DNA of 64,000 nt. Source: Neoechinorhynchus agilis (taxonomy: Eukaryota > Animalia > Acanthocephala). The notes below the pieces were generated by a model. The model did not search any database. It was not told the DNA's origin and was given only the letters and a program-made list of their open reading frames with translations. Within the stretch, counting starts at the first letter, position 1, and each line of letters begins with the position of its first letter. A program made the position numbers and the translations under genes. Shown one piece after another: positions 7,093 through 64,000 of the stretch. The stretch covers positions 12,477,480 to 12,541,479 of the forward strand of contig CM121342.1 of the NCBI GenBank assembly GCA_051530055.1, given 5' to 3'.

Positions 7093-7244
7093 TGTGAACA
7101 AAGTGGTCATCCGTAATCGATCGTAAATGCGTGCATACGGTCGATTACATTATCGATCGGTTTAGTACCTGTTTGCACAGTTAAATTGTCGTTAATTATT
7201 CGATTGTTGGTTTTTGTTCAATAAAACTCTCCAACTGCAATACA
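7093..7244 (+). repeat. 3' LTR (~152 bp)
   Basis: Follows the polypurine tract and matches 3322-3474. Confidence 0.9.
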
Positions 7245-11130: not shown

Positions 11131-11151
11131 TTGGCGAAGTTTGTACATTTC

Positions 11152-27900: not shown

Positions 27901-27919
27901 TGAAATTTAAATCAATTTA

Positions 27920-29365: not shown

Positions 29366-29374
29366 GGTTACTTT

Positions 29375-40720: not shown

Positions 40721-41168
40721 ACATAGAGTTAGTAGAAGCATTCCGGCATCACCAACAAACGCTACCATGGATAAAAATCTCGGATAAAAACAATTAAAAA
40801 ATAAACAGTGTCGAAAAAATCTAGAATCGAGTTTACCAGCGTCCGCAAGTGGTCGCGACGTTTGCTGATCAGAATATGATTTAAAAAACTGGATGCCCGA
40901 ACTCTGCCAGGACGAACAAAGAAAAAAGTAAAAAGAAAGGTGGTACAAAATCAGAATTGGTGCAGAAGGAACTCGATAGGAAAAATACAGAGAAAGGGAT
41001 TTTCGAGAATTTGGATGCTATACTTCTAGAATTAAAATAGCTGATTAAACATGAACAGTGGAACGCTATTGTAAACAACAGCGCGTGTGCTTTATTTTCT
41101 CTTTTTCTGTGCAAATTCTTTTGCTAATCAACCACTTTCCATTAAATACACAACCTTTTGCACTAATA

Positions 41169-42437
41169 ATGAAGTTTTTAGAATTAAGACGAGCGACTAA
41201 CGTCGTCAAAGTCACCGATCCTAGTGAATTTTATGTCCGCCGGAAAGATCAACCTTTGGCATACAAAAATTTTCGCAATCAGCTACAAGAATCTTACAAA
41301 TACGAAAATGAATATCCTCCTAAGTGTAAACACTTTGGTTTCTTTTCCTGTGTAACATATTCACAAAAAGATGAATTATGGTACCGCGCTATTATTGGCG
41401 CCGAAAATTCATATTCAGTTACAGTACCGGCATTTATAGTGGACGAAGGTCGTACTGAAACCGCCCCACTGTCAAGTATTCAGCCGCTAAAGAATAAATT
41501 CTGCCAAATTCCAAGATTCGCATCAAAGTGCAAACTTCTGGGCATCAAACCGCTTCAAAATGAGAATGAAGAAAAGAAATGGTAAAAAGATGTAGTGAAC
41601 AGTTTTCAATTAGCAGTAAACCACGGAACACTTCTTGGTTCATTATTAAAAGTCAACGATAAGGAAGGTTGTTTTGAAGTAACTTTAAAAGACTTACAGA
41701 TTCAAGAATATGTTGGCAACAATCTTCTTAAATCGAATCTCGTGAAAGCACCCAATGAGCAACTTTCATGTTTTATTCCGCTTGAGCTTGAAATGGACAT
41801 ATAATAAATGACCTGGAGAAAAGAAATCCGTTTACCCGCGAAGATATGACCGGAGAAACCGTCGAGTGTATTATCACGGCTCTTAGCTTGATTAATTCGG
41901 GATACGTTCAAGAATATTCAAAACCGGCACCCTACACAAGCTTGAAAAAGAGTTACAGGACACCATTGAGAAAGACACATCAGTCGATTTGGATTTCCAA
42001 AACGGCGATCAGTGAGTCTTCACGGAATCGATTCCGTCTTCTCCTAGACATTCCACCCGCAACCCCATATAGCGATGAAAGCCATGGCAAAACGGCGTAC
42101 TTGGGCAGCAAACTCTCGCAACAAATTCTCCTACAACTCGAAAAGTCCTTTGATTACACTAATTATGGTCACGATAAAGAACTTCTCGAAAAGACAATAA
42201 CTTGGAAGATTACGTTTAAAAAAACATACTCACGTGCGCGAACTCTCGCAACAAATTCTCCTACAACTCGAAAAGTCCTTTGATTACACTAATTATGGCC
42301 ACGATAAAGAACTTCTCGAAAAGGCAATAACTTGGAAGATTACGTTTAAAAAAACATACTCACGTGCATTGGGCCGCAAAGACGCTACCACACTTCTTCG
42401 GCACGAATGTAAAAATCTAACACCAGCTCCACGATAG
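41169..42437 (+). pseudogene. Extended Tudor-domain pseudogene, copy 2
   Basis: VVKVTDPSEFYV...WYRAII...FIVDEGRTE...LKNKFCQIPRFASKCKLLGIKP...W*KDVVNSF (consensus W-S-x-E-A-x-x-x-F); premature stops at 41583 and 41802; internal duplication. Confidence 0.78.
42111..42370 (+). repeat. 130-bp tandem duplication inside Tudor copy 2
   Basis: aactctcgcaacaaattc at 42111 and 42241; single copy in the 9.8-kb paralog. Confidence 0.93.
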
Positions 42438-42834
42438 CTCGAATCATTGGAGAATAAAAAAGAGCGACGTGGGGAACGGCAATGCAGCTATAGATAGCGG
42501 ATGGCGATTTGGAAAACACAAAAACGACAGAATTCTATTCCGTTTGTGAATTTGGCGCACATTTAAATTTTAGGCGTAATTTTTTTTAATCGAAAAAATT
42601 GATTTGTAAAAGGTAGTAATGTAATCTGCGTGTTCAAAGTCTTTAAAAAAAGAAGCGATTTTATTCGTTTCAAAACATGGCCGAAACCGCAGCCGAAGGA
42701 TCATTAAGTCTTCCACCATTTTATGGATAAGAAATGCAGCGGACTTTTTGCCGCAGCCGCAATCGTAATCAATTAATTTTTGACGGAACGAACATTGAAT
42801 TATTTTTTAATGTGCCACTCAAGGAAAAATAGTT

Positions 42835-43391
42835 CATGAATTATCTACTGATTTCGCAATAAAACAGAAAGCGACCGTATTCTGCTCGTTCGTTTGTGAT
42901 GCTTCAGTTTTTCATTATTGAAGGCGAAAAGATGCGAAGTCCAAAACACTTTTTGCAATAAAGTCAATGTTACATTCAGCGCTTACCCTTTAAAAAAATT
43001 GCGATTAATTTCCAAAATTTACTCAAATGCTCGTGAATTATCTGCTCCTTTTGAAAAATTAACAAGCAAGAAAACAGAAAGCGACTGTATTCTATTCAGT
43101 CGTTTGTGATGCTTCAGTTTTATCGTTATTGATGGCGAAAAGATGTGATGTTCAAAATGCTTTTTGCAATAAAGTCAATGTTACATTCAGCGCTTACCAT
43201 TTAAAAAAATAGCGATTAATTTCCAAAATTTACTCAAATGCTCGTGAATTATCTGCTCCTTTTGAAAAATTAACAAGCAAGAAAACAGAAAGCGACTGTA
43301 TTCTATTCAGTCGTTTGTGATGCTTCAGTTTTATCGTTATTGATGGCGAAAAGATGTGATGTTCAAAATGCTTTTCGCAATAAAGTCAATG
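42835..43391. repeat. ~210-bp tandem repeat, ~2.5 copies
   Basis: gaaagcgac anchor at 42871, 43081 and 43292; a partial single copy at ~10400-10500. Confidence 0.92.
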
Positions 43392-43394
43392 CAG

Positions 43395-43920
43395 CAAGAG
43401 ATGTTATCTTGCCCATACTGAGAACCTCTGGCCACTTCGAGTTGGCATCTACCACCACTAACCACATTTTGCTTTGACTTGGACCCGCTAGATCAATGTG
43501 TATCCTATCCCACAGTCTGCTAGAAAGTGGCCATGTACCTGGTACCGCTTTTGTTATGGCAGGTCTACATTCCTGGCATTGCTGTCACAATCCCACGAAT
43601 TTTTCAAGATCTGCGTCGATTCCAGGTCACCATATGTGATATCTTGCTAACGACTTCATTCCTGATATCCCAGAGTGACCAGTGTGCAGATAGGATAGAA
43701 CGCTATTTCGAAGAGTTTGGAACAATGACTCTGCCTAGCCAGAGAATGATACCATTTTCTACCGCCAATTATAGCTTTCGGCTCTTGAATAGCAGCAACT
43801 CCTTCGACACTTTATCCAGCCATCGGCATTTCACATAACGTTTGACTAGCATGAGTGTTGCTTCTTCCCTCGTTGCCTGTTGAAGCGATTCCACAGATAG
43901 ATTAAATTCATCTAAGCTCG
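43395..43920 (-). mobile_element. Decayed Gypsy (Mag-like) integrase N-terminal remnant
   Basis: LQQATREEATLMLVKRYVKCRW...LAVENGIILWLGRVIVP with multiple stops. Confidence 0.7.
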
Positions 43921-43968: not shown

Positions 43969-46959
43969 GATGTTAGTGCTCTCTTTGCCAATGCCCCACA
44001 GTCTAAAACGATTGAATTATGGACCGAATCACGAATCGTTGAGGAAGCCACATTGCACATTAAAGGCGGCTCAGCCTTTGCGCGTGAAATAGAGAAATTA
44101 AACGTCGATCAATGTAGAATGTTTGCAGTTGATGTTAATGCTCTCTTCATCAATGTCCCACAGTCTAAAACGATTGAATTATGGGCCGAATCACGAATCG
44201 TTGAGACAGCCACATTGCACATTAGGTACGGCGCAACGTTTGCAGTTGAAATCTAGAAAATAAACGTCGAGCAATGTAGAATGTTCGCAGTAGTTGTTAG
44301 TGCTCTCTTAACCAATGCCCCACAGTCTAAAACGATTGAATTATCGGCTTAATCCTAAATCATTGCAACGGCCACATTGCACATTAGGTACGGCCCAACG
44401 TTTACGGTTCAAATCGAGAAACTAAACGTCGAGCAATGTAGAATGTTCGCAGTAGATGTTAGTGCTCTCTTAACCAATGCCCCACAGTCTAAAACGATTG
44501 AATTATCGGCCGAATCCTAAATCATTGCAACGGCCACATTGCACATTAGGTACGGCCCAACGTTTACGGTTCAAATCGAGAAACTAAACGTCGAGCAATG
44601 TAGAATGTTCGCAGTAGTTGTTAATGCTATCTTCATCAATGCCCCACAGTCTAAAACGATTGAATTATCGGCTTAATCCTAAATCATTGCAACGGCCACA
44701 TTGCACATTAGGTACGGCCCAACGTTTGAGGTTTAAATCGAGAAACTAAACGTCGAGCAATGTAGAATGTTAGCAGTAGTTGTTAGCGCTCTCTTAACCA
44801 ATGCCCCACAGTCAAAAACGATTGAATTATCGGCCAAATCCTAAATCATTGCAACGGCCACATTGCACATTAGGTACGGCCCAACGTTTACGGTTTAAAT
44901 CGAGAAACTAAACGTCGAGCAACGTAGAATGTTCGCAGTAGATGTTAGTGCTCTCTTTACCAATGCCCCACAGTCTAAAACGATTGAATTATGGGCCGAA
45001 TCACGAATCGTTGAGACAGCCACATTGCACATTAGGTACGGCGCAACGTTTGCAGTTGAAATCTAGAAAATAAACGTCGAGCAATGTAGAATGTTCGCAG
45101 TAGTTGTTAGTGCTATCTTCACCAATGCCCCACAGTCTAAAACGATTGAATTATCGGCTTAATCCTAAATCATTGCAACGGCCACATTGCACATTAGGTA
45201 CGGCCCAACGTTTACGGTTCAAATCGAGAAACTAAACGTCGAGCAATGTAGAATGTTAGCAGTAGATGTTAGTGATCTCTTAACCAATGCCCCACAGTCT
45301 AAAACGATTGAATTATCCGCCGAATCCTAAATCATTGCAACGGCCACATTGCACATTAGGTACGGCCCAACGTTTACGGTTCAAATCGAGAAATTAAACG
45401 TAGAGCAATGTAGAATGTTCGCAGTAGATGTTAGTGCTCTCTTAACCAATGTCCCCCAGTCTAAAACGATTGAATTATGGGTCGAATCACGAACCGTTGA
45501 GACAGCCACATTGCACATTTAGGGTGGCCCAACGTTTGCGCGTGAAATAGAGAAATTATACGTCGATCAATGTGGAATGTTTGCAGTTGATGTTAATGCT
45601 CTCTTCATCAATGCCCCAAAGTCTAAAACGATTGAATTATGTGCCGAATCCTAAATCATTGCAACGGCCACATTGCACATTAGGTACGGCCCTAAATTTA
45701 CGATTCAAATCGAGAAACTAAACGTCAAGCAATATAGAATGTTTGCAGTTGATGTTAATGTTCTCGTAACCAATGCCCCACAGTCAAAAACTATTGAATT
45801 ATCGGCCAAATCCTAAATCATTGCAACGGCCACATTGCACATTAGGTACGGCCCAACGTTTACGGTTTAAATCGAGAAACTAAACGTCGAGCAATGTAGA
45901 ATGTTCGCAGTAGTTGGTTAATGCTATCTTCATCAATGCCCCACAGTCTAAAACGATTGAATTATCGGCTTAATCCTAAATCATTGCAACGGCCACATTG
46001 CACATTAGGTACGGCCCAACGTTTGAGGTTTAAATCGAGAAACTAAACGTCGAGCAATGTAGAATGTTAGCAGTAGTTGTTAGCGCTCTCTTAACCAATT
46101 CCCCACAGTCAAAAACGATTGAATTATCGGCCAAATCCTAAATCATTGCAACGGCCACATTGCACATTAGGTACGGCCCAACGTTTACGGTTTAAATCGA
46201 GAAACTAAACGTCGAGCAATGTAGAATGTTCGCAGTAGATGTTAGTGCTCTCTTTGCCAATGCCCCACAGTCTAAAACGATTGAATTATGGACCGAATCA
46301 CGAATCCTTGAGATAGTCACATTGCACATTTAGGGCGGCCCAACGTTTGCGGGTGAAATAGATGAATTAAACGCCGTGCAATATAAAAGGTCTGTAGTTG
46401 ATGTTAATGCTCTCTTCATCAATGCCCCAAAGTCTAAAACGATTTAATTATCGGCCGAATCCTAAATCATTGCAACGACCACATTGCACATTAGGTACGG
46501 CCCAACGTTTACGGTTTAAATCGAGAAACTAAACGTCGAGCAATGTAGAATATTCGCAGTAGATGTTAGTGCTCTATTTACCAATGCCCCACAATCTAAA
46601 ACGATTGAATTATGGACCGAATCACGAATCCTTGAGATAGTCACATTGCACATTTGGTGCGGCCCAACGTTTGCGCGTGAAATAGATGAATTAAACGCCG
46701 TGCGATATAGAATGTCTGTAGTTGATGTTAATGCTCTCTTCATCAATGCCCCAAAGTCTAAAACGATTGAATTATCGGCCGAATCCTAAATCATTGCAAC
46801 GGCCACATTGCACATTAGGTACGGCCCAACGTTTACGGTTCAAATCGAGAAACTAAACGTCGAGCAATGTAGAATGTTCGCAGTAGATGTTAGTGCTCTC
46901 TTAACCAATGCCCCACAGTCTAAAACGATTGAATTATGGGCCGAATCACCAATCATTGC
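43969..46959 (+). repeat. 162-bp satellite array, ~18.5 monomers, derived from the motif-A segment of a Penelope-like RT
   Basis: aaaacg anchor at 44005, 44167, ... 46922 (19 hits, all 162 bp apart except one at 163); monomer reads ATLHIRYGPTFTVQIEKLNVEQCRMFAVDVSALFTNAPQSKTIEL, usually with stops. Confidence 0.97.
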
Positions 46960-47380
46960 CCCGATTTAACGGTTCACGAGTATGACCTCATTTGAATTCG
47001 AAATTACGTTCTTCGATCAAACAGATGAGTTAGCGGTGGGCTCGCCATTGACTCCGAAATTCGCCGGCGTCTACATGCTTGAGTGAGAGACGACTTTCTT
47101 GAAACTTCACAGCGATGTCACTACCTGTTTGCGGTGCATTGATGGTTTGGATTTTCATAGCTCTGAAAAGTAAGTTCTAACCATACGTTTTAGGTTTAGT
47201 CAACGTATTCATTTGACAGATTGATAGACCACGGGAAGTCATATTGTGAGTTTTAGGGCGCGTACCACAACTCTGTGCATAAGTTGTGCTTAATTCACCC
47301 GTGGAAAGTTTGCATTTACCTTTGACGTTGAGAAAAACTGCAATATAAAACGCATAAGCGAGTTTAGTAAGAGCTTAAAA
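46960..47380 (+). mobile_element. Decayed PLE RT motifs B', C and D, continuing in frame from the last satellite monomer
   Basis: TSFEFEITFFDQTDELAVGSPLTPKFAGVYMLE*ETTFL (B'), CLRCIDG (C, from RYVDD), FAFTFDVEKN (D). Confidence 0.8.
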
Positions 47381-47387
47381 AGTAACC

Positions 47388-48833
47388 GTGGAGATGTTAT
47401 CTGTTTCACAACTTCTCTTTATTCTCGAATTCTTAAATCAGTCGAATAGGAAACCGGTTGACAAATGTGAAATAATATACAATACAGCCGATATAATTAT
47501 GATAAATTGTGATTTTAGTAGTTCGAAATCCGGTAATGTACTTCCAAACTTAACTGATGCAATTCATGGAGTCGACGAAGCTCACGTCTATGTACTATTC
47601 TTATCTGGAGTTTCAATTGACGACATTCCAATAAACTTAAAACGCGTATTTCCTAATTTAACCTACTTATTCGTAAAACATTACAATGCTATTCCATTCT
47701 ACCAATCAATCGATTTTATTAGCAACGTGAAAGCAGTGTACGTTACTCAGATGGACATTCCGAACATCAGTCTGCATCACGAATGTCTAACGAAGGAACT
47801 CCATCTGACGGAAAGCAATATCATCCATCTCGACAACAAATTGGGAACGATGCTGCCTCAATTAGAAATACTCGATCTTAGAAGAAACCATTTGAGTGCT
47901 TTGGATGAACTTGTTGACTTTTGCAAACTAAGAGAACTTTACCTCGACCAAAACCTGATTGAAATATTACGGTTCTCATCAAGAAGTTGCTTTGAGAGTT
48001 TAGAGATACTTTCTGCTTTAGGCAATCACATTTTCGCAGTGAATATTGAACAAGGGCTTAAATTAGGTAATTTAAAAGAAATTCACATTTCTTTGCTATC
48101 TAGGATTGATCATGGAATGCAAGTTTTGCAGAAGATATCAAGCATGGAAACAATAACTATTGAAAATTCAGTTGACCACAGATATGATGCATCCAAGTTG
48201 AATGATACTCTTAACAATCTACAAACCTTAAAATTTGTTGATGGACATTTGAAAGCGTTCCCTCGAGGAGGTCAACTTACTAATAATACTATTAGGATCA
48301 TGTCACTGGCCAGTAATTCGATCGTAAAAATAGTGCAATCAGATTTCTCACACTGGCGAGGATTGCAATCCCTGGATCTTGCAAATAACCAACTCAAATC
48401 CATTCCGGATGATGCCTTTATATTCTTAGAAAATCTTAACGTTCTTAATCTTACGGGAAACAAATTGTCCGTCGATATTGTACTTCCACCACTTAGGAAA
48501 CTTTATTCAAGCTTTCTCATCTCTTTGGACAAAACCTCCTTTGTGTGGATCGATACCAAAATCAAGGAAAATCTTGCCCTTTTAAATTCCACGCGTTCAC
48601 GAGCTCAAATGTCTCATGAAGGAATTGTTAATTCTCTTCTTGATCATTTTTCAACCTTCTTCATTCCCTCTATCAATTATCCGTACGAATGGAAGGGAAA
48701 AAGGATAGTGGAGAAGCGTCAAAAAGAGGAATTTCCGAGCGGAGTTTCACCGAGAAAGGAGCTGAAAAATGCTGTAGCCTTAAATAGCAATTTCACGATG
48801 TCAAAACTTTTTCATTTCGGCATTGGAAGATGA
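47388..48833 (+). CDS. Leucine-rich repeat protein, copy B; first ATG at 47394
   Basis: 481-aa ORF (479 aa from the ATG) with 8 amino-acid differences from copy A and no disruptions. Confidence 0.9.
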   Translation: MEMLSVSQLLFILEFLNQSNRKPVDKCEIIYNTADIIMINCDFSSSKSGNVLPNLTDAIHGVDEAHVYVLFLSGVSIDDIPINLKRVFPNLTYLFVKHYNAIPFYQSIDFISNVKAVYVTQMDIPNISLHHECLTKELHLTESNIIHLDNKLGTMLPQLEILDLRRNHLSALDELVDFCKLRELYLDQNLIEILRFSSRSCFESLEILSALGNHIFAVNIEQGLKLGNLKEIHISLLSRIDHGMQVLQKISSMETITIENSVDHRYDASKLNDTLNNLQTLKFVDGHLKAFPRGGQLTNNTIRIMSLASNSIVKIVQSDFSHWRGLQSLDLANNQLKSIPDDAFIFLENLNVLNLTGNKLSVDIVLPPLRKLYSSFLISLDKTSFVWIDTKIKENLALLNSTRSRAQMSHEGIVNSLLDHFSTFFIPSINYPYEWKGKRIVEKRQKEEFPSGVSPRKELKNAVALNSNFTMSKLFHFGIGR

Positions 48834-48839
48834 TAAATT

Positions 48840-49700
48840 GATTTAAATTTCAATTTTAGAAAGGAATAAACTATTAACAAATATCGTGAAGGTTTAGCAG
48901 CATTTCAGATTATTTATCCCTCAAACTAACTCACTTTGTAATGATCAAAAGAACTGGATCACTTGACAAGATTGCATAGAGCACCAGTATCGCATAGATA
49001 AAGGCTTCCACAATCAACGGAACAAAATTCTTCGCCATAAAAGGTGACACAAAAAGACCTAAGCATTCGAATTTAAGAGCTAGAAGATATCAAATGCTAT
49101 TGAGGATATTTTTCACAGCCTAATATATGTAGGGTAGGAAAAATAGGCAGGATGTAAATAATAATTTCCGAATAAATTCTTTACATCTTTTAAAATTCAA
49201 TTAAAATATCCAAGAAATGCCCTTATTCAGCGCTTCAGCAAGCGGACCATGCAAGATACACTTACTCAAACGAAATGGCTGCGAGCCAGAATGGAAATAC
49301 GAAATGGTTTTTCGGACATAGGCCCACAGACCAACTTTGGCGAAACAAAATCTCAAAGATCGTTAAGAGAAGCCGTCTGTCAATAAAATGTCAATTCGAC
49401 TTCCGACCCTCCATGACAATGGGGAACATAATTTTGCCGGAAATACCATGAAATAGAGAAAAGGCTGTTGTCTACAAAGTTTCTTGTAGCCATTGAAACA
49501 GCAGTTACACTCGCCAAACAAGCTGAAATCCTAAGATGAGATTTGACGAACATAAGCGCTCCGATACGCGTCGATTGTCGCGCTGAACGAGGTAAAAACG
49601 GATCACGTTATAGATTATGGTTAATATATGATTTGAGCGAGTTAGACTGTCTTAATTGATTAACGGAAAAGGATTTGAACGACCAAGGAAGTTAAAAACG
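48840..49700 (+). mobile_element. Decayed PLE thumb, linker and GIY-YIG remnant (right arm)
   Basis: KYPRNALIQ (~49205), FRPSMTMGNIIL (~49400), EKAVVYKVSCSH*NSSYTRQTS*NPKMRFDEHKR (~49458-49560). Confidence 0.72.
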
Positions 49701-50058
49701 TTCCCTTAAAATCTACATGATCATAGTGACCAAACGAAGTTCAAAACGAACGGTTACTATAAAAAAATGCCATCCACATGAATTTCGTTACAATCAACAT
49801 CGCTTTATTATCCTTTTCCAATGTATTATTTTTTGGTTGTGAATAATATGATCGATTTTATAAATACAAAAAGGAAAAAAGCACGGGTTAGACCCGAATT
49901 TAAATTCTCTAAATAAATTACTATTCGTACATTCATTTACAATTTACTCGACTTGAAAGACTTGTTTTTAGACTGGGATTCTCGCTTTGTTTTCGTAAAA
50001 TAATTTCTAAGCCTCTGCCTTTCTTGGTCCGTCTCGTCGGACTTCTTCAGGTTGCTTG

Positions 50059-51050
50059 TAAGTTTTTAGCACAGATTCATCCTCGGTTTCTTCACACGAG
50101 AGCCGCGAGAGTACATCCGCCATGTTATTCTCCTGTCCTTTTATATGTTCCAAGACGTATTTGTACTGTGAAAGTATCAATCTCCAACGCACTAATCGGT
50201 GGTTTACTACTTTTCGCAAATCTCTCTTATCGCCGAATACCTAATTCAGTTGCTTATTGTCAGTTTTCAGCACAAATTCACGGCCGGCCAGAAACATGTT
50301 GAATTGGGTGACTCCGGGCACCAGAGCGAGTGCTTCTCTATCGATTTAGCATATTTTTGCTCCGCGGCTTTCAATGTTTTGGACGCATACGCTACTGGTC
50401 GATACATTTCTTTGTGTGCTTCTTGTAGTAGAACAGCGCCGACTCCTCGCTCACATGCATCACAAATAACCTGCAATTTACTCTGGCGTCAGCCAAAGCA
50501 TCCTTGATCTTTTTGATTTGGTTTGTCATCTCATCTAACCATGCCCATACACATTTCGAACTGGTCAGTTTATACAAACCTGCACACTTGGCTTGTATAT
50601 TTGGTAGGAACTTCTGCAAAAAGTTTACCGATCCAAGAAATGCTCGGAGTTCTCTTGCATTCGTTGGTGTTTTCATGTTTTGAATCGCTTTGATCCTCTC
50701 GTTACTTGGTCGAATTGAATTGTTATCCAAAATATGGTCCAAAAACGACACTTGTTGAAGAAAAATGCATTTATTTCCTCTTATTCGCATTCCAGCTTTC
50801 TGCAGCCCTTTTAACACTTCTTTCAATCTGTTTAAATGACTATCAATATCTGCAATCAACTGTTCCATATAGCGCTGGAACATTAACGGCGCTGCTGAAA
50901 CCCCGAATGGAAGCTGACAATATCGAAAATATCCGATGGGTGTGGCGATTGTCAACATAAAACGTGAATTCGGTTCCACCGTCATCTTTAAGTATGCCTC
51001 TTTTAAATCTAGTACTGAATATTTCTTTCCATTAGCAGCCAGCAACATAA
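50059..51050 (-). mobile_element. Gypsy RT/RNase H fragment with internal deletions (YxDD segment missing)
   Basis: LDLKEAYL, YCQLPFGVSAAPLMFQ, LRAFLGSVNFLQKF, CDACERGVGAVL, RPVAYASKTL, RLVRWRLIL. Confidence 0.88.
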
Positions 51051-51799
51051 AATTCGCTGCTGTTAAACTGGGAGAGCAGCATCCGTCTCAGAGGGTAGCA
51101 AAAGGCTAAAGAAAGAAATTATTTCGTTCCCTTTGGTCGTCGAGACACTGGGATCGTTTGGTACCGCGGAGCAGCACCTGGCCCAGGAATTGTCGAAGAG
51201 TGAGATGAATTACTGACGATGCGAAAGTCGGAGCATTTCTCCTGCAAAACTTAAGCCTGGCTGTGTAACGGGGAAGGACGCTGCATCCGCCCTTTCGACC
51301 ACTACACCAGGACAGTAGTTGAGTAATCTAAAGCATGGGCGTGAATGTTTATAAACTCTTTTTGATTAAAAAAATATCAGATAATTTTCGCAATTGTAGC
51401 ATCTACGCCATAGAACTTAAATAGATCATTGTTGCATATAAGGAGCTTGAGAGATTTGATTAAAATTGCTAGAATTCCCCGTTTACTCGGATGATAAGTG
51501 TTCAGCCTTCACGAGGGAGCCTTGCTTCATTAGCAATCTAAAACGATTTTAGTTGTTTTGTATTTAATTGCTCGAGTACGTTGAATCGCTATTCCCGAGG
51601 TTCGCAGAACGAATGCTCGCTCCTTGCGTTGTGTGGCGTTTTTAATTGTTGTTTTATTTATGTCCGTTGTCCTACAAAATGAGTCCCATCTTGCTTCGTC
51701 GATCCATGGAATGAAAAACTAGCAATAAAACAACAAAAGCTTCCATAACAAATGATTAGTTAACGAACCAACCGGCACGTTTTTTAGGATCATTAAGGG

Positions 51800-54680
51800 T
51801 ATCCATTCCCATACAATCACCCCTTACCAACAATTTTGGTGGCCAAATAACAAAAATTAGGGAACACGCACACCGTAACGCGGCGGAGACAAAAAAATTA
51901 AATAACGAAGTTCAAGCTTGCTAGCTTCCCAATGCACGACATATTATGGCTTGGTCTGCTCGCTGCATTTCCTTCAATATTTCGCAAATCCGCTCTGCTG
52001 ACTGTCATGATTGCGCACACACGATGTCTATATTCTAACTCGACAATCACACCTCGCATGTACACTCATATAAATATAACTCAAACGTTCTTCGTCGATC
52101 AATAACGTAATACAACTGTACATCACTGCGCACATCACTGCATCCTCTCCCTCGCCGACTTCACATATTCGTCGTAAGGAAGTACCGGTTAACCTCGAAC
52201 TCTGCTTCTTCTAGGCATCATCTCATCCTGATCTGTCTCTACCATTGGAATCCTTCCGTTGTTGACTTGGTAGTTCGCTGTAGTTCCCTCTTCCATTCCT
52301 CTTTCTTGTCATCGATTTGTGTTCATCTTCTCCTCGTTCTTCCTTGCACTATATTTAATTTCGCGACTCCTCTGGATGACCCTCCGCTACTTCACTATCG
52401 CAACGGGCTCCCGCTCCTTATCTTGTGCGCTCAGAGCATAATATGCTGGCCCTGACGCTTCCTTGATCACTCTCTTGGTCCATACTTGATCTCTCGGGGA
52501 ACGGTAAAATACCTTATCTCCCTTTTGAAATAAACGTGATTGAGACCTTTTATCGTGCCATTTTTTCTGCTTACGCATATTCTCATTCATCGTTGGTTCC
52601 AAAGACGGCCTCATTCATAGTCGTTTGTGGTGAGTTTCTATAGCTCAGCAAAAATCGATGGACTACCAATGACCTATCGTTGCTCTTAACGAATAAAGCG
52701 CTCGTTTTTAACGTTTTGATGAATCTTTCCACTAGTCCATTGGTTTTTGGATGATAGGGAGAACCTGTCACGCGCTTGATCCCATTCGCCCTGCAAAAAT
52801 CTTTGAAATTCGTGGAAACGAATTGCGGACCATTGTCGCTGACAATTGTCTCAGGAACTCCCCATCTCGCATACGCTTGTCTCAAACTGACTATCGTTGC
52901 CTGAGATGTAAATCCCGTACCGGATGTCCACATCTCCGGATATTTTGAGTATGCGTCAATCGCTACTAGATACATTTTGTTTTCCACCGGGCCGGCCAAA
53001 TCAACGTGAACTCGCTTCCACGGGCCCGGTGGAATGTCCCAATTTAGAAGCCGGATTTCGGGTACATTCAGCCTTAGCCTTTGGCATTCAGCACATGTAC
53101 TCACTCTGCGTTTTATATCGTTGTCCATCGAAGGCCACCAGCAGTAGTAACGAGCCACGGCTTTAGTCGCTGCTTCGCCCGCGTGTCCATGCATCATGTC
53201 CAAAAATTGTTTTCGAAGATTCTTTGGCACTATCACCCCTTTGAAGCCACATCGCAATCCCATTTTCCAATGATGACTCATCTTTTCTTTGAAAGTATGA
53301 TTTATATTCCTAATCGACTTTTACCGGCCATCCTGATCGAATGAACTGTTTGATTTTAGTGAGCTCCATGTCTTTCTTCGACTCACTCGTTAAACTTTGC
53401 ACCGAGATTCTGAAACGATCCATCTTCTCTTCTTGAATAATGTTTATAGTATCGTCCGTTTGACCCACATCCCCCATCTTCACATCGAACATCCTTGACA
53501 GAGTATCTGCTATCTGATTGTTCTTGCCTTTTATATGTTGTTGTGGTAGCTGGCATCAGTAGATCGAAAAATCTACTGTCGCCGCACAAGAATGGGTTTT
53601 TTATTCAACATAGCACGGGAAACGTTAACATGAACCTTATGGCGTCGTTAATGGTCACTACAATGTTCGATTTTATAATTGTATTGTTGTAACTTGAGTA
53701 ACCATCGCACCAACTGACTATTCGTCATCTTTGGTAAGTCTCGTCTTTCGCCAAAGATAAATTTCCGTGGCTTATGATCCGGATGAAATTTTTCTATTCC
53801 GAAAACAATCGATAAAGCCTCCCTCTCAATAGGGACATAATGCTTTACCGCTTCGTTTAGTAATCTCGATGCATATCCAATCGGTTCTACTTTATCCGCA
53901 CCCATATCGTGAAAAAATGCCGCGCTTAGTCCCCGTTCGCTGGCGCCGCACATCAACAACAATGATAGTTTGTTCGAGTATGTCACCAATCGTTCTGGTC
54001 GCTTCAATGCTTCCTTCACGCACAGAAACGCGTGCTTGTGTTCCGAATTCCATATCCATTTCGACTTGGGCACATTAACGAGTTCGTACAGTGGCGCACA
54101 CCGAGATTGAAAATTCGCAACGAATTTGGCGCGGAAATTGGCTAACCCGAGGAAAGAACGAAGCTCCGCTGCGTTCCTGCGTTCCGCTGCATTAACTAAA
54201 GCAATCGTCTTCGATTCGGTGGGCATTATACCTTCCTATCAGATGCGGCATCCTAAATACTGTACTTCTTTCCTCATTATTTTGCATTCGATGCTACCAG
54301 TCGCCTGAACACTTCCTCCAATTTATTCTGGTGCTCTGCTGGGTTCGTTCCTCCAACAATAATATCGTACATATAAGCGCCGACCCCTGAAATGTCATCC
54401 AATAGTTTGTCGATCATCTTCTGAAAGATCGTTGGCGCTGCGCTTATCCCAAACGGCATCCGCAAGTATCGATAGTAACCCTAGGGAATGGTAATCGTCA
54501 GCGACCGACTAATTTCCTCACTCATCTTTAGTTGGAAATATGCCTCTCTTAAATAGATCGTGGTAAAAATCGAACATTCAGCTGCATTCTGCACCAGATC
54601 CTCGAAAGTCGGCATTTGATATTCGTCGTAGTCCAGGAAATTATTAAGCGTAACTCGAAAATCCCCACACAATCTTAAAT
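51800..54680 (-). mobile_element. 5'-truncated Gypsy (Mag-like) element: RT, RNase H, integrase, PPT and a 3' LTR starting at 52142
   Basis: CGDFRVTLN, RMPFGISAAP, PIGYASRLL, GHAG...WWPSMD..C..C, VHVDLAGP, VSDNGPQF, YHPKTNGLVERF; PPT ggcgagggagagga followed by TG; LTR end not determined. Confidence 0.88.
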
Positions 54681-54685
54681 TTAAA

Positions 54686-56650
54686 TTACTCTTGCAGACT
54701 ACTACTAGCGGGGTCGCCCACTCTATATGCTCGTTTGCACCTATCTCCCTCAGGACTCACAGGACTGTTTTTCTTCGATAACAATTTTTTAATTACGCAA
54801 TCTACTACGCCTATAAAAGGGTCTCTCATCTTGAGGTGCAAGAAAATGAAAACATCATCCGCGTAACTCAAAAACGGGCATTTGAAACTTTTTTGAAATG
54901 CTTCATAATACCGATCATCCCGACAACAAACATAGTGCGTGCTAACGGAGACCCTTGTGGAACCCCGTACATTGAGAAAAATTGATTTTTGTCAGGATCT
55001 AGTACCAGAATATAGGATTTAGATTCCATAAGGAACTGAATCCGTTTCAATAATTTATCAGGGAGTTTCAGCTCTTTATAAACATCATAAAATAGTTCCA
55101 ACTTATCGCGTCAAACGCTTTATTGATTTTCGACCTGCAATAAGGTTTTATTAACACCCCCATATTTTTTGTTTAAGTTTGTTAGGTCCATAAACAGAGA
55201 ATCCACCCCGTATCCTGGGACAAACCCATGAAAGCTTTGTGGGATTAAGCGTCTCTTTATTATTACCTCCAGTAATTCAGAATTCGTCACCTTCTCCAAT
55301 AAGGACACAATGGGGTTTTGAATGGAAATGAAATGCACATCTCCCGGGGATTGAATTTTCCCCTTCGTTTTTGGGGTGATTGTTTTCCGAACAACATTGA
55401 TTATCTGAAAACAACGAAACTACCAACCAACAAACGCCAAAAAGGTGCTGCCCTAAAATGCATTCCACCACCTCGGATATGAAATGCTCCCAATCCAGTT
55501 CGTTGCTTTCAACTTCCAGTCCACCCATTTTTTAAAATTTACGTTCCAAAAAGCTTTGGATCATTTGCCGGTTCTATCTAATGCATCTCTGTCCCTAATC
55601 TCTGTCCAAAATCATTGCCGCTAGCCTCCGCTATTCTAGAAAAAAACGAAACTTTCGGTTAGCTAGTTTAGAAAGGCGGAAACGGCGTGTGTGGGCAAAA
55701 GTCACCAAGTGGCGGTGCGCTGCTTCGGAAACAGCATCATTTAGTGAACAAAAATCCAAGGTGTGTTTGTGTTTTGTTTGAAGGTTTACGAATAAAGGTT
55801 ACTCATGTCAATCACCTCCCCCCTTCTACACTGAAATCCGGTATGGCTCCATTCGCAACACTTTGAGCATTGTCTTAGCACAAAATTCTGAATAGATTCT
55901 CATCCAGTATGCCATAAATCCAAACTCCCTGCCTCGAACTGTATCAAGCCGATCTTGGGTTCCTGTAACCAGTAAAACATAAGTCTCATGTCCCTGATTT
56001 TTGCGTAAATATTTAATAGGAATGAGGCCAAACACCTTTTCAAAGTTCTTAAAGTCTTCCTCCGACATAATAGGGGTGGATTAAACACCATCGCTGTAAC
56101 TCTTCTTGAAATATCCGTATATTTTATATTTTGATTTTAGCAGTTACTAAAACAGGTTTTTACCTTCTACTTCCATGAAGATTAGCAGGGCGGACCACTT
56201 AGCCAGAAAGGCTCTTTTAATTAGATATTTTCTACCCCCTCCAATTTCTTAACAGCTAGATCATCCCTATAATAGATAATAGTAAGATCATCAAGGGAAA
56301 ACTCCGCCATATCCTCCATCCTCACCCTAATCCCAAAATCATCCTCTTTCCTGGGTAAACGAGATATGCCTATTATCTATCCTTTGCGAATGCCCGGACC
56401 CGCCTCATCCATAACTTTGCCATAAAAGCGACCCTTAAAACCGGGATATAAGAGCCTGAAAATACTGACATGTTTCGGCTTGTGCCTGATCCACATCTAT
56501 AGCTTCAACTCCTCCACGGTCATCAGGAGGATCTGGAGGTCTCGGATACTCGAAACTATCGTTTTCCGTTCGGACGCAATTTTCGTTATTACAAAAACCA
56601 CGTATCTTCCAACTGTTGTTAAACATGTCGCTGATCGGTAGTTTTAAACT
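54686..56650 (-). mobile_element. Internally deleted copy of the divergent I-group-like LINE; 55701-56650 is an inverted near-identical copy of 359-1326
   Basis: RPPDPPDDRGG, FEKVFGLIPIKYL; RT remnants ISIQNP, FHGF, GVPQGSPL, YADD. Confidence 0.82.
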
Positions 56651-57100
56651 AAAGTTTTGGTACCTTTCATGGTGTTGGGCGCGCGGAGATATAGTTAAGG
56701 TCTCAAGTGTAAAACGTCTTTTGAGGTTTTGCTCTCTCGCCACAAAATACGTGCAATTAAAATCTGCACGATGTTGTAGAGTATCTTGTCGATTATCTTT
56801 TGCGGCGGAGATTCTCTTCTTGATGCCCCGCAGGTTCAATGTTTATCTTTTTCTTGAGAGTGTTTTCGATTGTGATTAATTTATTGTGGTACAACAGAAC
56901 TCCAGTCTTCGTCTTCAATAGCGAGTGGATCGACCAATAAGTTTTATCTTTGATCAAGTTCTATCTTTCGAAGGTAACAGAATCTAAAGGCTAATTTGTG
57001 TTGCGTGGCCGGTAATCACATCTTTGGATTGCACAGTCTATTATCAAGCGAGGATATCCCTTTCAATTCTTCGGCGATCCTTTCCGTTTCTTTATGCAGA
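56651..57100 (-). mobile_element. Decayed PLE remnant (thumb and GIY-YIG C-terminus)
   Basis: LHKETERIAEELK.GYPRLIIDCAI; QHRADFNCTYFVAREQNLKRRFTLETL resembles KHRADFGDTYFLEKEK-NLKRRLVLEAL at ~63920-63997. Confidence 0.7.
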
Positions 57101-57101: not shown

Positions 57102-57510
57102 CTGCACATTAAGGACGGCCCAACGGTTGTTATTGAGATCTAGAAACTAAACGTCGAGCAATATAGAATGTTCGCAGAAGATATGAATGCTCTCTTCACC
57201 AATGCCCCACATTTTAAAACGATTGAATTATCGGCTGACTCATCAATCATTGCAACGGCCACAGTCCACATCAAGGACGACCAAACATTTGAGGTTGAGA
57301 TCAAGAAACTAAAGGTCGATTAATATAGAATGTTAACAGTAAATGTGAATGCTCTCTTAATCAATGCCGCACATTCTAAAACGATTGAATTATCGGCTGA
57401 CTCACGAATCATTGCAACAGCCACAGTGCACATTAAAGGCGGGCCAACGTTTTTTGGTTGAGATCTAGAAACTAAACGTCGAGCAATATAGAACGCTTGC
57501 GATCGATGTG
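57102..57510 (+). repeat. Third, more diverged cluster of the 162-bp PLE-RT satellite (~2.5 monomers)
   Basis: aaaacgattgaattatcggc at 57216 and 57378; reads LHIKDGPT...KLNVEQYRMFAEDMNALFTNAPHFKTIEL. Confidence 0.9.
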
Positions 57511-58969: not shown

Positions 58970-61700
58970 TTTTTTTTAATAAATAATCTTTTTATTGTTT
59001 CTTTTTAAAGGACAATTTTAGGATTAAATCGTCCCCCGGACGCTGACCGCATTTTCTCGTTGGATTGCGAGGCTTATTCTTTGGATCAGGAAAATCCTCT
59101 CGCGTCGCTCCCCTGTTTGTGCTGCAAGTCGTCTTCCGAGTTCGGCACAAAAGCTTCGTGCCGAAGATCCCAGCGCCCCTTGTGTTTCCACGCCGAAAGG
59201 AAGAAAAATGTAATTTTGTTTGAGCTCATTGTATTTCTCCGCTTTCCTCCTTTCGGCGGCACTCGCTGCTCCTCCCGTCTCCGCTAAAGCATCTTGCCGG
59301 TTGGACAGGGCGAGTGAGTCCACGCATGTTGCGTCCCAAATTAGACTCTTCCCTTCTTTCCAAGGGAAAACGGTTATACCGTCGGGACGCTTACCATCCG
59401 AGCGACAGAGGTGATTGGGCTCCAGGATGGTTGGAACGTGGATCGAGTTCAGAGCTCTGCTAATGATCGCATTGAGCTCTGCGTGCCTTGGGAAACGACC
59501 GCTCGATCTCTTGCAGTAGAGTCCATGTCTCCCGAGCACGTCAACTTTTATTCCACATCGGCACTGGTGTCGGGCACAGGTTGGAAGTCCTAAACGTAGA
59601 GCGACGGCTATTCGAACTGTCTCGTCGTCCAGCAAAGTTCCCAAAGTACCAATTGGCAAAACGTTCAACCATGCGCCTGACTCCTTCGAGGAACTGGCCA
59701 CAAGTCTAGCTAAGCCTAAACCTCCGTATTTGATCGGAAGGGCAGCTTGTTGCCAAGCTTCATCAGTGATGGCGCAGTTCGTTACCTTCTCAAGATGCTT
59801 TTTCATCAAACCATCTAAGTCAAGGAGACGTTTAATGTGTCGGAAGTACGGGGCTGCTCTCATCTTGAACATAAGCTTCGGTATGTATAGGCAGTTTCTC
59901 ACCAAGAAGAAAGCTTTGTGTGCATTCAATTCTTGAACCCGGGAGCACAAAAGATCCAGTTTAGGAAGCTCTTTTTCTATCTCGCGATCTATGTTCGCCT
60001 CCAGGACGCAACTGCCGAGAAGAGTGAAGCTTTGCCGGTTGATTAATCTTATTCCTGGGGCAACGGATTCGAAGGACTGCATTATATCCGCCATGCGAGA
60101 ATGTGAAATATTTAGTGGCAATAGTTCACACTTCGCGGGATTGACACGTAAGCCCAATTCCGCAGCAGAAACAAGCAGGGATTGCAGGTCTTCTAGAACC
60201 GTCTTTGGGTCACCGCCCAATGTCGCGTCATCCAAGTACCAGACGTTCAAACTTGCCTTGAGCTTACGAGATATTCCATTGGTTGTTAAGGAAAATCCTA
60301 TGGGGCCGAGAGGATCGCCTTGTTGCAGGCCTGTTTCGGACCAAATGGTGTGCTCGTTGAAATGTAGAGGTGTCTTAGAAGCATACGCCTTCACAAAGTA
60401 TTCATAGGCTTCAGGTAATTCTCGAGCAATGGTACTTAGCAAGGCTGTTCGATCGACTGTATCAAAGGCGTTCGAAAAATCGACTTTTAGGACAACCGTT
60501 GGGGTGGCAGAGGCGTCGATATAGGTACGTGTGGAGTGCACTATCGTTTCTGCTCCACATGGAGTACAGCAGCCAAACTGAAAACGTCTGAGTTGCTCAC
60601 TTAACCTTTCGCTCAGTCGCTTACACAAAATCTTCCCTGTCAAACGTCTTAGAGTGCAGCCCACAGCTATCGGACGAATATCTCCGTTTGATTTGGAAAG
60701 GGCGCAAAGAGATGCCGAGAATAAAAATTCGTTGCTTCAAGTGGGAGAGGTCCATTTATGATTTCATCGACCACATTAACGAGCTCGGTTTCGAGCTTCA
60801 TTCCCATCACTCCCGTTCCAAATCCCAACATATCCTTGATGTGTTGGGGTAGAAGTCCGTCGGATCCATGTCCCGACCCATTGGGGAACGAGGATACAGC
60901 ACATCTAAGTTCCTCCCGCGTGCACCTCGTCGATTGACGCGACTTTTCCGGTATCGGGGGCAAAATCGGTGGCAAAGCTGAAGGATGCTTACTTCTCAAC
61001 GCCTCCAGTGTCGAGCGGTCGTTGTCCGCAAACGTAGCCGTGGAACTGAGTAACCTGACCGCTCCACGGACATCTGCGTCTGCCAATTTGGCAGAAATCC
61101 TATTACTCAAATTATAAGGACGGCCGAAGGGTCCTTCTGGACGTTTCTTGGTAAAGTTTGATTATTGTAACTTTTCGTCACAGCCTCCTCAAAAAGTCGA
61201 TCAAAATTGGTTATCCGCTGCTTGATGGTGGTTGTGAGGTTGGACTCGGGGTCACGGCTAGTACTCAGAACCAATTTTGGAAAGGCGAATAAACGTGAAT
61301 AGTTTGTATTCGTCGGTTCAGATAGGCAGTTTGCCAGCAGCTTCGAGAACATTTCACAGCAGCTATTCCTGGCTCCTTTTGGAATCCTCTTCAAGACCGT
61401 TTTTGGAAGATATTGTAAGAGGCGCTTCATCACATTTTGAGTTTCGAGACTGTCGATGATAAAAGGTTTGTCCAACACTGGTGGAAGGGAAGATCCAGGG
61501 CATCGAGATCGTACCGGGCCATGTTTTCGAATGAGTCCACTTATCGTCACGCCTATGACGTGATCGCATACAGTACAGCGAGTCGAAATCGAAAGCGAAG
61601 TGGGCGGAGGGAAGAGATCTGCCTCATTACTGAGGAATGAATTTGTTTGTAAGTTTTTAATACGAAGAAAAATCTGTTGTTATCCCACGATCGAAGGTTC
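58970..61700 (-). mobile_element. Near full-length CRE-clade element (N-terminal zinc finger, RT, RLE), frameshifted
   Basis: CTVCDH..GLIRKHGP..RCPGS; VDFSNAFD, GLQQGDPLGP, WYLDD, CRCG...HGLYC, RHAELN, RPDG, WDATC, VETQG; aataaa and an A-tract at the 3' end. Confidence 0.92.
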
Positions 61701-63325: not shown

Positions 63326-63599
63326 AAAAAAGCCAGACGTAAACAAAAAACTAGTTTAATTCATCAGATAAGCAATTGAAGCCGATGACAAATTTAAAGT
63401 CACGACTAAGATTTAACTTTATGATCTCATAAATCACCTATTAAGTTTAATCCGTTGAAAACCTGTGAAACGACATCGATCGATAGGCAGAAAATAATGA
63501 TGCCATTTCCTTTTAATATATAAAGAATGTGACCTCCTGGTCACGCACGGGTCGTGGATTATGGAATTTAAAAAGTCCATCAAATCAACTGGTGATCAA

Positions 63600-64000
63600 A
63601 TCTATTTATGACGCTGCAGAGCCTGTATGCTTCGAAAGAGTGCACTTCATTGATGACACGAATCAAATGATCTACTCCATTATGAGAAATAAGGTTAGAA
63701 TTCGTCTATACAATACTAAAGAAATCGTTCTCAGAAGCACATTAAGGAGGAGGGGTAAACTGAGCCGACTGATGGGATATATAGAATTCATTGTGAACAG
63801 TGTGAGAAAGTCTATATCGGACAAACGTTGCAAGGCATTGAGAAGAAGGTCGCTCAACATAAGCAAGCCTGCAGTCGATTTGAGCATTCCTCGGCAATCT
63901 CCAATCATCAAGAAACCTTTAAGCATCGCGCGGATTTTGGTGACACTTACTTTCTAGAAAAAGAAAAACTTAAAAAGACGTCTTGTTTTGGAGGCCTTAC
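63600..64000 (+). mobile_element. PLE linker plus GIY-YIG endonuclease, running off the window end
   Basis: DGIYRIHCEQCEKVYIGQTLQGIEKKVAQHKQ...SAISNHQ...HRADF from ~63772; frameshifts on both sides. Confidence 0.85.

Follow-up and report, generated by a model that had tools for sequence, protein, structure and literature searches.

How does an intact, intronless LRR gene come to lie between the pieces of a dead Penelope-like element (PLE), and is it a working gene? The question is raised by a stretch of 64,000 nt, hereafter the window, on chromosome CM121342.1 of the fish parasite Neoechinorhynchus agilis (Acanthocephala). A preliminary description had proposed that an LRR cDNA or exon was captured by, or retroposed into, a PLE and is kept open by selection, with a neighboring satellite as a possible regulatory element. 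The features on which the following account is built are collected in Table 1. The surroundings in the window contain many unrelated transposon fragments, together with LTR and LINE ORFs, and the genome paper of N. agilis mentions neither the gene IDs nor LRR nor Penelope.

Table 1. Features of the window; positions are counted from its first nucleotide.
Feature	Position	Strand	Remarks
Possible N-terminal region of the dead PLE (weak)	43566-43888	+	Aligned to reference PLE residues 106-213
Satellite of 162-bp units, 18.5 units	43969-46959	+	TRF
PLE RT remnant	46960-47142	+	Motif B′ (VGSPLTPKFAGVYM, 47036-47077); motif C-like "RCID" at the junction
Upstream part of gene unit	47143-47393	+	BLASTN homology edge to L001 at 47143
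LRR gene, copy 2	47394-48833	+	479 codons and stop
3′ UTR-like end of gene unit	48834-48920	+	AATAAA at 48865-48870
286-bp stretch without assignment	48921-49206	+	Where PLE motifs D/E and thumb (~333-339 bp) are expected
PLE remnant: end of thumb, linker, GIY-YIG endonuclease	49207-49682	+	Frameshift-aware alignment to L001 PLE
Copy 1 of inverted segmental duplication	26212-30922	-	Matches 45831-50067
Copy 1, GIY-YIG	~26596-27071	-
Copy 1, gene unit	27834-29610	-
LRR gene, copy 1	27920-29359	-	479 codons and stop
Copy 1, RT remnant	29611-29793	-
Copy 1, satellite	29794-30922	-

The LRR Gene and Its Family

The LRR ORF is real and, as had been described, 1.44 kb long and open in both window copies; read from a GTG (47388 on the plus strand, 29365 on the minus strand) instead of the ATG, it has 481 codons. 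The two coding sequences differ by 15 nt and 8 aa, and the product of copy 2 matches the hypothetical protein ACOME3_007607 (100% identity across 97% of the length). Tandem LxxLxLxxNxL repeats forming a solenoid, by which LRR proteins are defined, are found both by Pfam (LRR_8, 3.7e-19) and in the AlphaFold2 model, in which an N-terminal hydrophobic helix is followed by an LRR solenoid at about residues 24-360 (pLDDT 70-90) and a C-terminal tail of low confidence (pLDDT < 50). The helix (residues 2-17) is compatible with a putative signal peptide. Foldseek neighbors of the model include Toll/TLR, LGR5, SHOC2, and bacterial LRR proteins (E ~1e-8), which are generic LRR ectodomains. Pfam finds no TIR or any further domain in the protein, and no TM-like segment is evident in its tail. 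The product would be at most a secreted LRR protein and no receptor of the Toll type. Its probable role in the parasite is to bind ligands, either as a secreted protein or at the surface.

A protein search with the LRR product returned only the window protein and one N. agilis paralog (87% aa identity), located 1.1 Mb away on the same chromosome, between GST and eIF2B genes, at a locus designated L001. The LRR genes thus appear to be a three-member, lineage-specific family on one chromosome.

Comparison with L001 delimits what has been copied. Positions 47143-48920 of the window match L001 9770-11526 at 90% (BLASTN), with no homology past either edge, and in this 1.78-kb gene unit the CDS is preceded by about 250 bp, which include a TATA region that is almost invariant, and followed by a 3′ UTR of 87 bp. 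The TATAAAA box (47344-47350) lies about 200 bp inside the 5′ edge. Over the 57 bp through the ATG, a three-way alignment shows one substitution and one 1-bp indel between window and L001; the distal upstream part is 22% diverged, with 4 indels. From this conservation, the copied unit appears to carry a core promoter (the TATA region), and no PLE similarity is found in its upstream part (z ≤ 0 by frameshift-aware alignment). At the other end, homology to L001 breaks off sharply 50 nt past AATAAA, and neither poly(A) nor any other A-run is present at 48920 or at L001 11526.

At L001 the LRR unit is present without the PLE and the satellite of the window, and the promoter is kept with no satellite nearby. 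A different, better-preserved, 5′-truncated PLE on the same strand ends 360 bp upstream of the paralog there, and the block of PLE plus gene is bounded by inverted copies of an unclassified repeat, R. As candidates for R, a hammerhead-bearing PLE terminus and a tRNA-derived SINE were considered, for which Rfam and ARAGORN gave nothing; Rfam at E ≤ 1 was likewise empty over L001 7300-12100 and window 10800-11900. That a same-strand PLE adjoins the gene unit at both known loci is more than would be expected if PLEs were uninvolved.

Remnants of a Penelope-Like Element

The PLE pieces were aligned with a custom frameshift-aware protein-versus-DNA aligner, with dinucleotide shuffles and genomic segments as nulls. 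Such remnants are beyond the sensitivity of phmmer run on X-masked translations of six frames. Stop-masked PLE pseudo-proteins had no Pfam match up to E = 10, and a composite PLE pseudo-protein had none in a word-based protein search.

Upstream of the gene, a stop-free 38-aa piece translated from 46970-47083 has PLE RT matches at E = 3.2e-4 among 1.84e9 proteins, and the upstream stretch with motif B′ aligns to the reference PLE with z = 8.3, none of 200 shuffles being as good. The residues "LRCIDG" (47129-47146) follow motif B′ by 18 residues (19 in the reference), at the position expected for RYVDD, and it is within this RT motif C, at 47142/47143, that the PLE sequence ends and the gene unit begins. 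Downstream of the gene, the alignment to the L001 PLE scores 108 where shuffles give 42.7 ± 6.1 (z = 10.7), the best of 90 other genomic segments reaching 58, and the GIY-YIG portion alone (49455-49682) gives z = 9.7, with the nuclease motifs VVYKVSC (49467-49487) and RFDEHKR (49539-49559). This nuclease region was found only with the PLE of L001, from the same genome; with the vertebrate-type reference PLE, z was -0.8.

Both pieces lie on the plus strand, collinear and degraded, and they are as stop-ridden as had been described: the RT remnant has 2 in-frame stops, and the downstream alignment, over some 160 codons, has 7 stops and 4 frameshifts. What joins them is harder to trace. In the 286-bp stretch past the gene unit, two PLE queries gave z values near 0 or negative for the thumb (z = 14.1 in a control on the L001 PLE), and the sole BLASTN match of this stretch within the window is copy 1. 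Motif D/E candidates picked by eye, at 47215-47260 inside the unit and at 48925-48985 past it, failed shuffle tests. Of the ordered, same-strand series of domains given in the preliminary description, motif A (in the satellite), B′, and a C-like motif upstream, and the linker and GIY-YIG downstream, are recovered, but motif D and the thumb are not. The locus resembles an EN+ PLE in its PLE-type RT core motifs and in a same-strand, C-terminal GIY-YIG downstream of the RT; motifs D/E, the thumb, and a single intact ORF are not found at the window locus. A common origin of the two remnants in a single, interrupted PLE is likely rather than proven, because about 110 residues (D/E and thumb) are absent between them. 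Upstream of the satellite, the weak alignment listed first in Table 1 (z = 2.7, with 1 of 100 shuffles as good) is suggestive only of the N-terminal region of the dead PLE. No further copy of this PLE family, lacking the insert, was found within the window.

A Satellite Derived from the Reverse Transcriptase

Each satellite unit (54 codons) corresponds to about 25 codons preceding PLE RT motif A plus motif A itself (FAVDVSALFTNAP). The unit aligns to residues 276-318 of the reference PLE with z = 5.9 (0 of 100 shuffles as good), tblastn yields PLE matches once per repeat unit, and the array runs straight into the remaining RT. Taken together, these matches identify the satellite, on sequence grounds, as an amplified fragment of the PLE RT. 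Satellites that arise by internal tandem amplification of a transposable element are a general phenomenon, and a 162-bp unit that is recognizably PLE RT around motif A is nothing unusual among them. A third array of this RT-derived satellite (57105-57493) adjoins neither PLE nor LRR sequence. The distance of some 430 bp between satellite and ATG, given earlier, is accurate (435 bp from the end of the array), but the regulatory role proposed along with it is unsupported, given that the satellite is a piece of amplified RT and that L001 keeps the promoter with no satellite nearby.

Inverted Segmental Duplication

The two window copies of the gene belong to an inverted duplication of at least 4.3 kb, with self-BLAST identities of 97.8-98.3% and per-region divergences of 0.8-2.2%. 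It has unique outer flanks and contains no Ns, and copy 1 includes an extra 476 bp at 27107-27582. In principle, a 98% inverted duplication could be an assembly artefact from uncollapsed haplotypes.

Selection on the LRR Gene

The openness of the ORF in both copies had been read as a sign of selection. Both are indeed open, but as recent duplicates that differ by 1-2% (15 CDS differences, P(no stop | neutral) = 0.56) their shared openness says nothing about selection, and the true test is provided by the L001 paralog, at 87% aa identity. In this comparison across paralogs, which the preliminary description had itself suggested, dN/dS between window and L001 is 0.45-0.48, falling to 0.065 in the LRR core (codons 301-400) and rising to about 1 at the CDS ends. 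The probability of no stop after 103 neutral substitutions is 0.019, and that of a synonymous count at least as high as observed is 0.012. Against L001, there are 0 indels in the 1440-bp CDS and 6 in 315 bp of noncoding sequence of the unit (Fisher p = 3.5e-5); by substitutions, the CDS has diverged by 7.2% and the noncoding part by 16.2%. This pattern of substitutions and indels indicates that the LRR gene is under purifying selection, so that the earlier claim stands in substance, although its evidence comes from the third paralog and not from the two window copies.

Selection could still have acted at L001 alone, if the window ORFs were young, non-functional duplicates that have not yet decayed and L001 were the sole working gene. 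The 0.56 probability given above, the dN/dS of about 1 at the CDS ends, and the transposon-rich location would all agree with this, as would the core of the putative signal peptide, in which copies 1 and 2 have a glutamate and the L001 paralog a valine. Substitutions alone cannot assign selection after the split to the window lineage; the lack of indels, however, argues for it, as a neutral window lineage would be predicted to have acquired about 13 indels per 1440 bp at the noncoding rate and has none (one-lineage P ~1e-6), with the caveat that indels may accumulate faster in AT-rich noncoding DNA than in coding sequence. With the core promoter nearly unchanged as well, and a dN/dS of 0.41 between copies 1 and 2 (small numbers), we consider non-functional duplicates highly unlikely.

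How the Gene Came to Lie between the Remnants

The capture of a cDNA or exon by a PLE, as proposed in the preliminary description, is unsupported. The unit begins some 200 bp before a conserved TATA box and is therefore not a processed mRNA; it also splits the RT catalytic motif, so that no autonomous element could have brought the gene there. No TSD is found at the junctions of either locus, no direct repeats frame 46960-50100, so that pseudo-LTR-like termini are absent, and Rfam gives no hammerhead ribozyme match at the gathering threshold across the window. A LINE-mediated processed retrogene would share with the unit the lack of introns, the discrete extent, and a defined 3′ end after AATAAA, but the window unit has neither poly(A) nor TSD and includes the sequence before the TATA box.

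We therefore lean, with little more than even confidence, toward a functional, compact host gene that lies beside an inert PLE and its satellite and was copied as a segment reaching from promoter to 3′ UTR. The mRNA of this gene, intronless and about 1.5 kb long, would be transcribed from a TATA-box promoter and end past the AATAAA signal; it would encode a hydrophobic N-terminal segment resembling a signal peptide, an LRR solenoid of about 340 residues, and a C-terminal tail under little constraint. The 1.78-kb segment would have been copied, as DNA, between the gene-rich L001 and the transposon-rich window locus, where the gene unit and the unassigned 286 bp would have taken the place of about 330 bp of PLE, which covered RT motifs D/E and the thumb. 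A later event duplicated at least 4.3 kb, from part of the satellite through RT remnant and gene to the nuclease remnant, and the two copies lie inverted about 17 kb apart. PLE pieces and satellite would then be inert neighbors, neither vehicle nor regulator of the LRR gene. Ordinary DNA-level or segmental duplicates are likewise gene-sized units under purifying selection with their own promoter and terminator, and a recent inverted duplication (1-2% divergence) likewise takes neighboring repeats along; what sets the present case apart is that the unit fits the gene unusually closely at its edges and that a PLE adjoins both loci.

The PLE adjacency, on the same strand at both loci, would be explained if a PLE RT had moved the LRR gene together with its promoter, either through a read-through transcript ("orphan 3′ transduction") from the PLE upstream of the gene at L001, 5′-truncated on insertion, or through template switching from PLE RNA to an LRR-containing RNA. 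The sharp 3′ edge of the unit past AATAAA resembles a transcript end, its 5′ edge is arbitrary, as in 5′ truncation, and the replacement of about 330 bp of PLE in place of a clean insertion fits template jumps. PLEs are known to spread intron-keeping genes, one of them an LRR gene (PMC3846280), and PLE RT initiates internally and does not require poly(A) (PMC11167929). On the other hand, the unit is not surrounded by pLTR-like direct repeats, TSD, PLE "tail," or hammerhead motifs, and the L001 PLE has neither the RT half nor any known promoter. Moreover, whereas the gene unit is 90% identical between the two loci, the PLEs that flank it there are only distantly similar as proteins and not at all as nucleotide sequences, so that PLE sequence did not travel with the gene. 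The stops and frameshifts of the window PLE also exceed what the age of the gene copies would lead one to expect, but stop density as an argument for a PLE older than the gene insertion is not decisive. On balance, dispersal by a PLE seems to us rather unlikely.

A further possibility is that there is no nesting, and that the upstream RT with its satellite and the downstream linker and GIY-YIG are two independent PLE insertions that flank the gene by chance. The joining residues are undetectable even though the thumb is well conserved among distant PLEs, as in the control above; the downstream piece has the shape of a 5′-truncated insertion, typical of PLEs (PMC8557442); the third satellite array stands alone; and unrelated transposon fragments crowd the surroundings. 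Yet both remnants are on the same strand and in the correct order, the 286-bp gap is near the length of the missing PLE segment, and chance agreement of strand, order, and spacing would come to about 1% by a rough estimate. In addition, the 3′ truncation of the upstream piece coincides exactly with the edge of the gene unit, an outcome that is not produced by PLE insertion alone. This makes independent insertions improbable, and the copying of a promoter-bearing DNA segment into one PLE remains our preferred account.

Relation to Known Systems and Implications

Terminons and Athena elements are EN-deficient, telomeric PLEs with accessory ORFs, which have no GIY-YIG and keep their RT intact with the extra ORFs outside it. 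The window shares with them a PLE-related RT and a non-PLE ORF on one strand, but its element is dead and has a GIY-YIG, and the ORF unit sits inside the RT catalytic motif. The PLE-mediated dispersal of host genes in bdelloid rotifers, which includes an LRR gene and retains introns (PMC3846280), is closer. Both A. vaga and N. agilis are Syndermata, a host gene lies beside an EN+ PLE, and one of the A. vaga cases is an LRR gene; the moved gene kept its introns there and the unit kept its promoter here, both of which point away from processed cDNA. The A. vaga gene, however, has PLE pseudo-LTRs on either side, with a TSD of 8 bp, and an empty allelic site was shown; the window unit has neither flanking repeats nor TSD and breaks the PLE coding region at RT motif C, and the flanking PLEs differ between the paralogous loci of N. 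agilis.

It is doubtful that the PLEs of Acanthocephala disperse whole, promoter-bearing host genes, as those of the related bdelloid rotifers do, and that the LRR unit moved in this way from the side of one PLE into another. To our knowledge, PLE-driven copying of intact genes has so far been documented essentially in bdelloid rotifers. If the PLE adjacency did reflect the mechanism, a second, parasitic syndermatan lineage would be added, again with an LRR gene; a general route by which host gene families are expanded by PLEs would be suggested, the parasite would have gained new expressed copies of a secreted LRR gene, and the reasoning that an intronless gene is a processed retrocopy would be weakened in PLE-rich genomes. 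Under the account that we prefer, the locus would exemplify, without surprise, a young, lineage-specific LRR gene family growing in a transposon-rich region of a parasite genome, and also a satellite born from a retrotransposon RT. For annotation, the LRR gene is to be treated as real and the PLE as dead.

The LRR gene and its paralogs

The ORF present twice in the window encodes an LRR protein that is 100% identical, across 97% of its length, to the hypothetical protein ACOME3_007607 of N. agilis (Acanthocephala); the source contig, CM121342.1 of GCA_051530055.1, measures 16.4 Mb. Pfam detected LRR_8 (3.7e-19) and LRR_4 (1.4e-12) and no other domain in this protein. Its AlphaFold2 model (mean pLDDT 64.7) comprises an N-terminal helix (residues 2-17), a solenoid (~24-360, pLDDT 70-90) and a tail (<50), and its Foldseek neighbours are generic LRR ectodomains and adaptors (Toll/TLR, LGR5, SHOC2 and Leptospira LRR proteins; E ~1e-8). 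Since the best match beyond N. agilis is only 24% identical (E = 1.9e-8), the family is lineage-specific. A third paralog, ACOME3_007916 (P0002; 479 aa, 87% identical to the window protein), is located 1.1 Mb away at locus L001 between GST and eIF2B genes. The analysis covered three loci of the genome.

The two window copies form a single inverted segmental duplication (98%, as read from a MaSuRCA hybrid assembly with purge_dups; the window contains no Ns), in which self-BLAST pairs 26212-27106 with 50067-49172 (98.3%) and 27583-30922 with 49171-45831 (97.8%). The copies diverge least in the gene 5′ region (0.8%) and the CDS (1.04%, 15 sites), and more in the 3′ PLE region (1.7%), past that region (1.9%) and in the RT remnant (2.2%). 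The probable original is copy 2; only there does the sequence go on 5′ into the whole satellite and a possible N-terminal part of a PLE, and the satellite of copy 1 adjoins a LINE. Copy 1 alone contains 476 extra bp (27107-27582), with a palindromic right junction (ATTTTCGA before and TCGAAAAT after the breakpoint), no clear TSD and no identity found. The length of this insertion equals the period of an unrelated tandem repeat at 7637-8685, to which no similarity was found.

Selection on the coding sequence

Could the window copies be young duplicates without function? Their being open in both copies, previously read as a sign of selection, carries no weight, because neutral sequence would still lack a stop after 15 substitutions with P = 0.56. 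Comparison with L001 is the informative one: dN/dS (Nei-Gojobori) is 0.475 for copy 2 and 0.448 for copy 1 against L001 and 0.405 between the window copies, dropping to 0.065 across the LRR core (codons 301-400), with values of about 1 at either CDS end. In a neutral simulation using the observed ts/tv ratio, 103 substitutions left no stop with P = 0.019, and the synonymous count reached that observed with P = 0.012. No indels separate the three CDSs (0 events in 1440 bp), whereas the noncoding part of the shared gene unit has 6 in 315 bp (Fisher p = 3.5e-5), and ~13 would be expected in the CDS if the window lineage alone were neutral; substitution divergence is 7.2% in the CDS versus 16.2% in the noncoding part. 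On the strength of dN/dS, the simulation and the absence of CDS indels, the ORF is kept open by selection, as the preliminary description had proposed, with a moderate relaxation at both ends; that the window copies are young duplicates without function is quite improbable.

PLE remnants and the satellite

A real, selected LRR gene sits in dead Penelope-like element (PLE) debris and was duplicated together with it. Stop-masked PLE translations gave no match by Pfam or word-based protein search, and a stop-free 38-aa piece (46970-47083) gave two among 1.84e9 proteins (E = 3.2e-4 and 5.2e-4). The database protein P0014 carries the motifs YGLPKIHKP...RPIVS, SYDVSALFTSVP and AAMGSPVSPIVANLYM, and its 6,753 relatives contain RVT_1, HTH_animal and DUF8422 domains. 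A 723-aa reference PLE, assembled from the database proteins P0041 and P0094 and a further locus, L003, was aligned to the DNA by a frameshift-aware dynamic programme, with dinucleotide shuffles as the null. Motif B′ (46985-47077) was recovered with z = 8.3 (0 of 200 shuffles as good), and 43566-43888 matched the N-terminal part weakly (z = 2.7). The string LRCIDG (47129-47146) lies 18 residues past motif B′; the reference has 19 before RYVDD.

Downstream of the gene the vertebrate-type reference failed (z = -0.8), and the PLE of L001 matched 49207-49682 with a score of 108 (z = 10.7; shuffle null 42.7 ± 6.1; top score among 90 other genomic segments 58), across 4 frameshifts and 7 stops; the GIY-YIG nuclease part alone reached z = 9.7. 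Motifs A, B′, C, linker and GIY-YIG of the preliminary description are therefore confirmed; motif D and the thumb are not, 48921-49206 giving z ≤ 0 with both PLE queries (positive control, reference thumb against L001 PLE, z = 14.1). The 5′ part of the gene unit showed no similarity to PLE. Separately, 63765-63941 (+), within an ORF at 63529-63957, weakly resembles the L001 GIY-YIG part (phmmer i-Evalue 1e-4, tblastn E = 0.069); the resemblance could mark a further PLE remnant or be fortuitous.

The 162-bp satellite unit (54 codons) arose by amplification of part of the PLE RT and continues straight into the remaining RT (46790-46915 against pre-motif A and motif A, z = 5.9; 0 of 100 shuffles). 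Arrays hold 18.5, 7 and 2.4 units; the last (57105-57493, ~80% identity) has different flanks, with neither PLE nor LRR alongside, so the satellite spread independently of the gene. The regulatory role once suggested for it is unsupported, because the L001 paralog, which lacks such an array, has retained the promoter of the window copies.

Origin of the arrangement

Nucleotide homology between window and L001 is limited to 47143-48920 against L001 9770-11526 (90%), with abrupt edges. The 5′ edge cuts RT motif C between RCID and G, AATAAA (48865-48870) precedes the 3′ edge by 50 nt, and poly(A), TSD and flanking direct repeats are all absent at the edges. Over the 57 bp through the ATG (TATAAAA at 47344-47350) a single substitution and a 1-bp indel separate the two loci, whereas the distal 190 bp show 22% divergence and 4 indels; the unit therefore includes a conserved core promoter, which rules out a processed-mRNA copy.

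We lean towards a DNA-level copy of the gene into a PLE relic. Several features argue against capture by the element, as first proposed: the unit splits the RT catalytic motif; ~110 PLE residues are missing, with the gene unit plus 286 unassigned bp in their place; terminal repeats, TSD, tail and hammerhead motifs are absent; and L001 holds the same unit but neither the window PLE nor the satellite. PLE-mediated transduction or template switching is a rather unlikely route, although it has a precedent in A. vaga, where Penelope elements copied intact host genes, one of them an LRR gene (PMC3846280); likewise, in N. agilis an LRR unit lies near a PLE at both loci, that of L001 being a different, well preserved, 5′-truncated element that shares the orientation of the unit and stops 360 bp 5′ of it. 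However, the PLEs of the two loci have no nucleotide similarity to each other and the gene units are 90% identical, so PLE sequence did not move with the gene. That the upstream and downstream pieces are two unrelated fragments is less likely still.

Other contents of the window and of L001

Transposons abound in the window, and duplicated blocks give the region a patchwork structure.

Features of the window and of locus L001
Feature	Position	Strand	Remarks
LRR ORF copy 2	47388-48833	+	481 codons; 479 from ATG
LRR ORF copy 1	27920-29365	-	481 codons; 479 from ATG
LTR-retrotransposon pol fragments	4468-7097, 50392-53281		Pfam
LINE RT and endonuclease ORFs	15769-16797, 32822-33385, 59024-60664		Pfam
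ORF, 560 codons	18816-20498	-	no Pfam match
Tudor-domain ORF	41058-41585		Pfam 1.3e-15; partly overlaps start of 41-kb repeat copy
Direct duplication	8966-10499 and 41249-42956		96-99% identity
211-bp tandem repeat	42856-43391		after 41-kb repeat copy, just 5′ of PLE and satellite
Inverted repeat pair	352-1326 and 55701-56656		95% identity; spans most of window
5′-truncated PLE	L001 7870-9409	+	motif E, thumb, linker; GIY-YIG open ~105 codons; far better preserved than window PLE
Repeat R, unclassified	L001 7494-7741 (rc), L001 11556-11652, window 11204-11484		

The L001 PLE contains an internal 320-bp inverted duplication (8166-8485/9004-8685, 98.8% identity) and repeats 58 bp of its start in inverted orientation after the nuclease (7914-7971/9551-9495). 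Inverted copies of repeat R bracket the PLE-plus-LRR block of L001; R carries GGTTCGAATCC (tRNA box-B-like) and CTGATGA/CGAAA; Rfam (E ≤ 1) found no hammerhead ribozyme in it, and ARAGORN no tRNA. A long tandem array (L001 1-3744; period ~105 bp, units 75-89% identical) lies ~6 kb 5′ of the LRR paralog.
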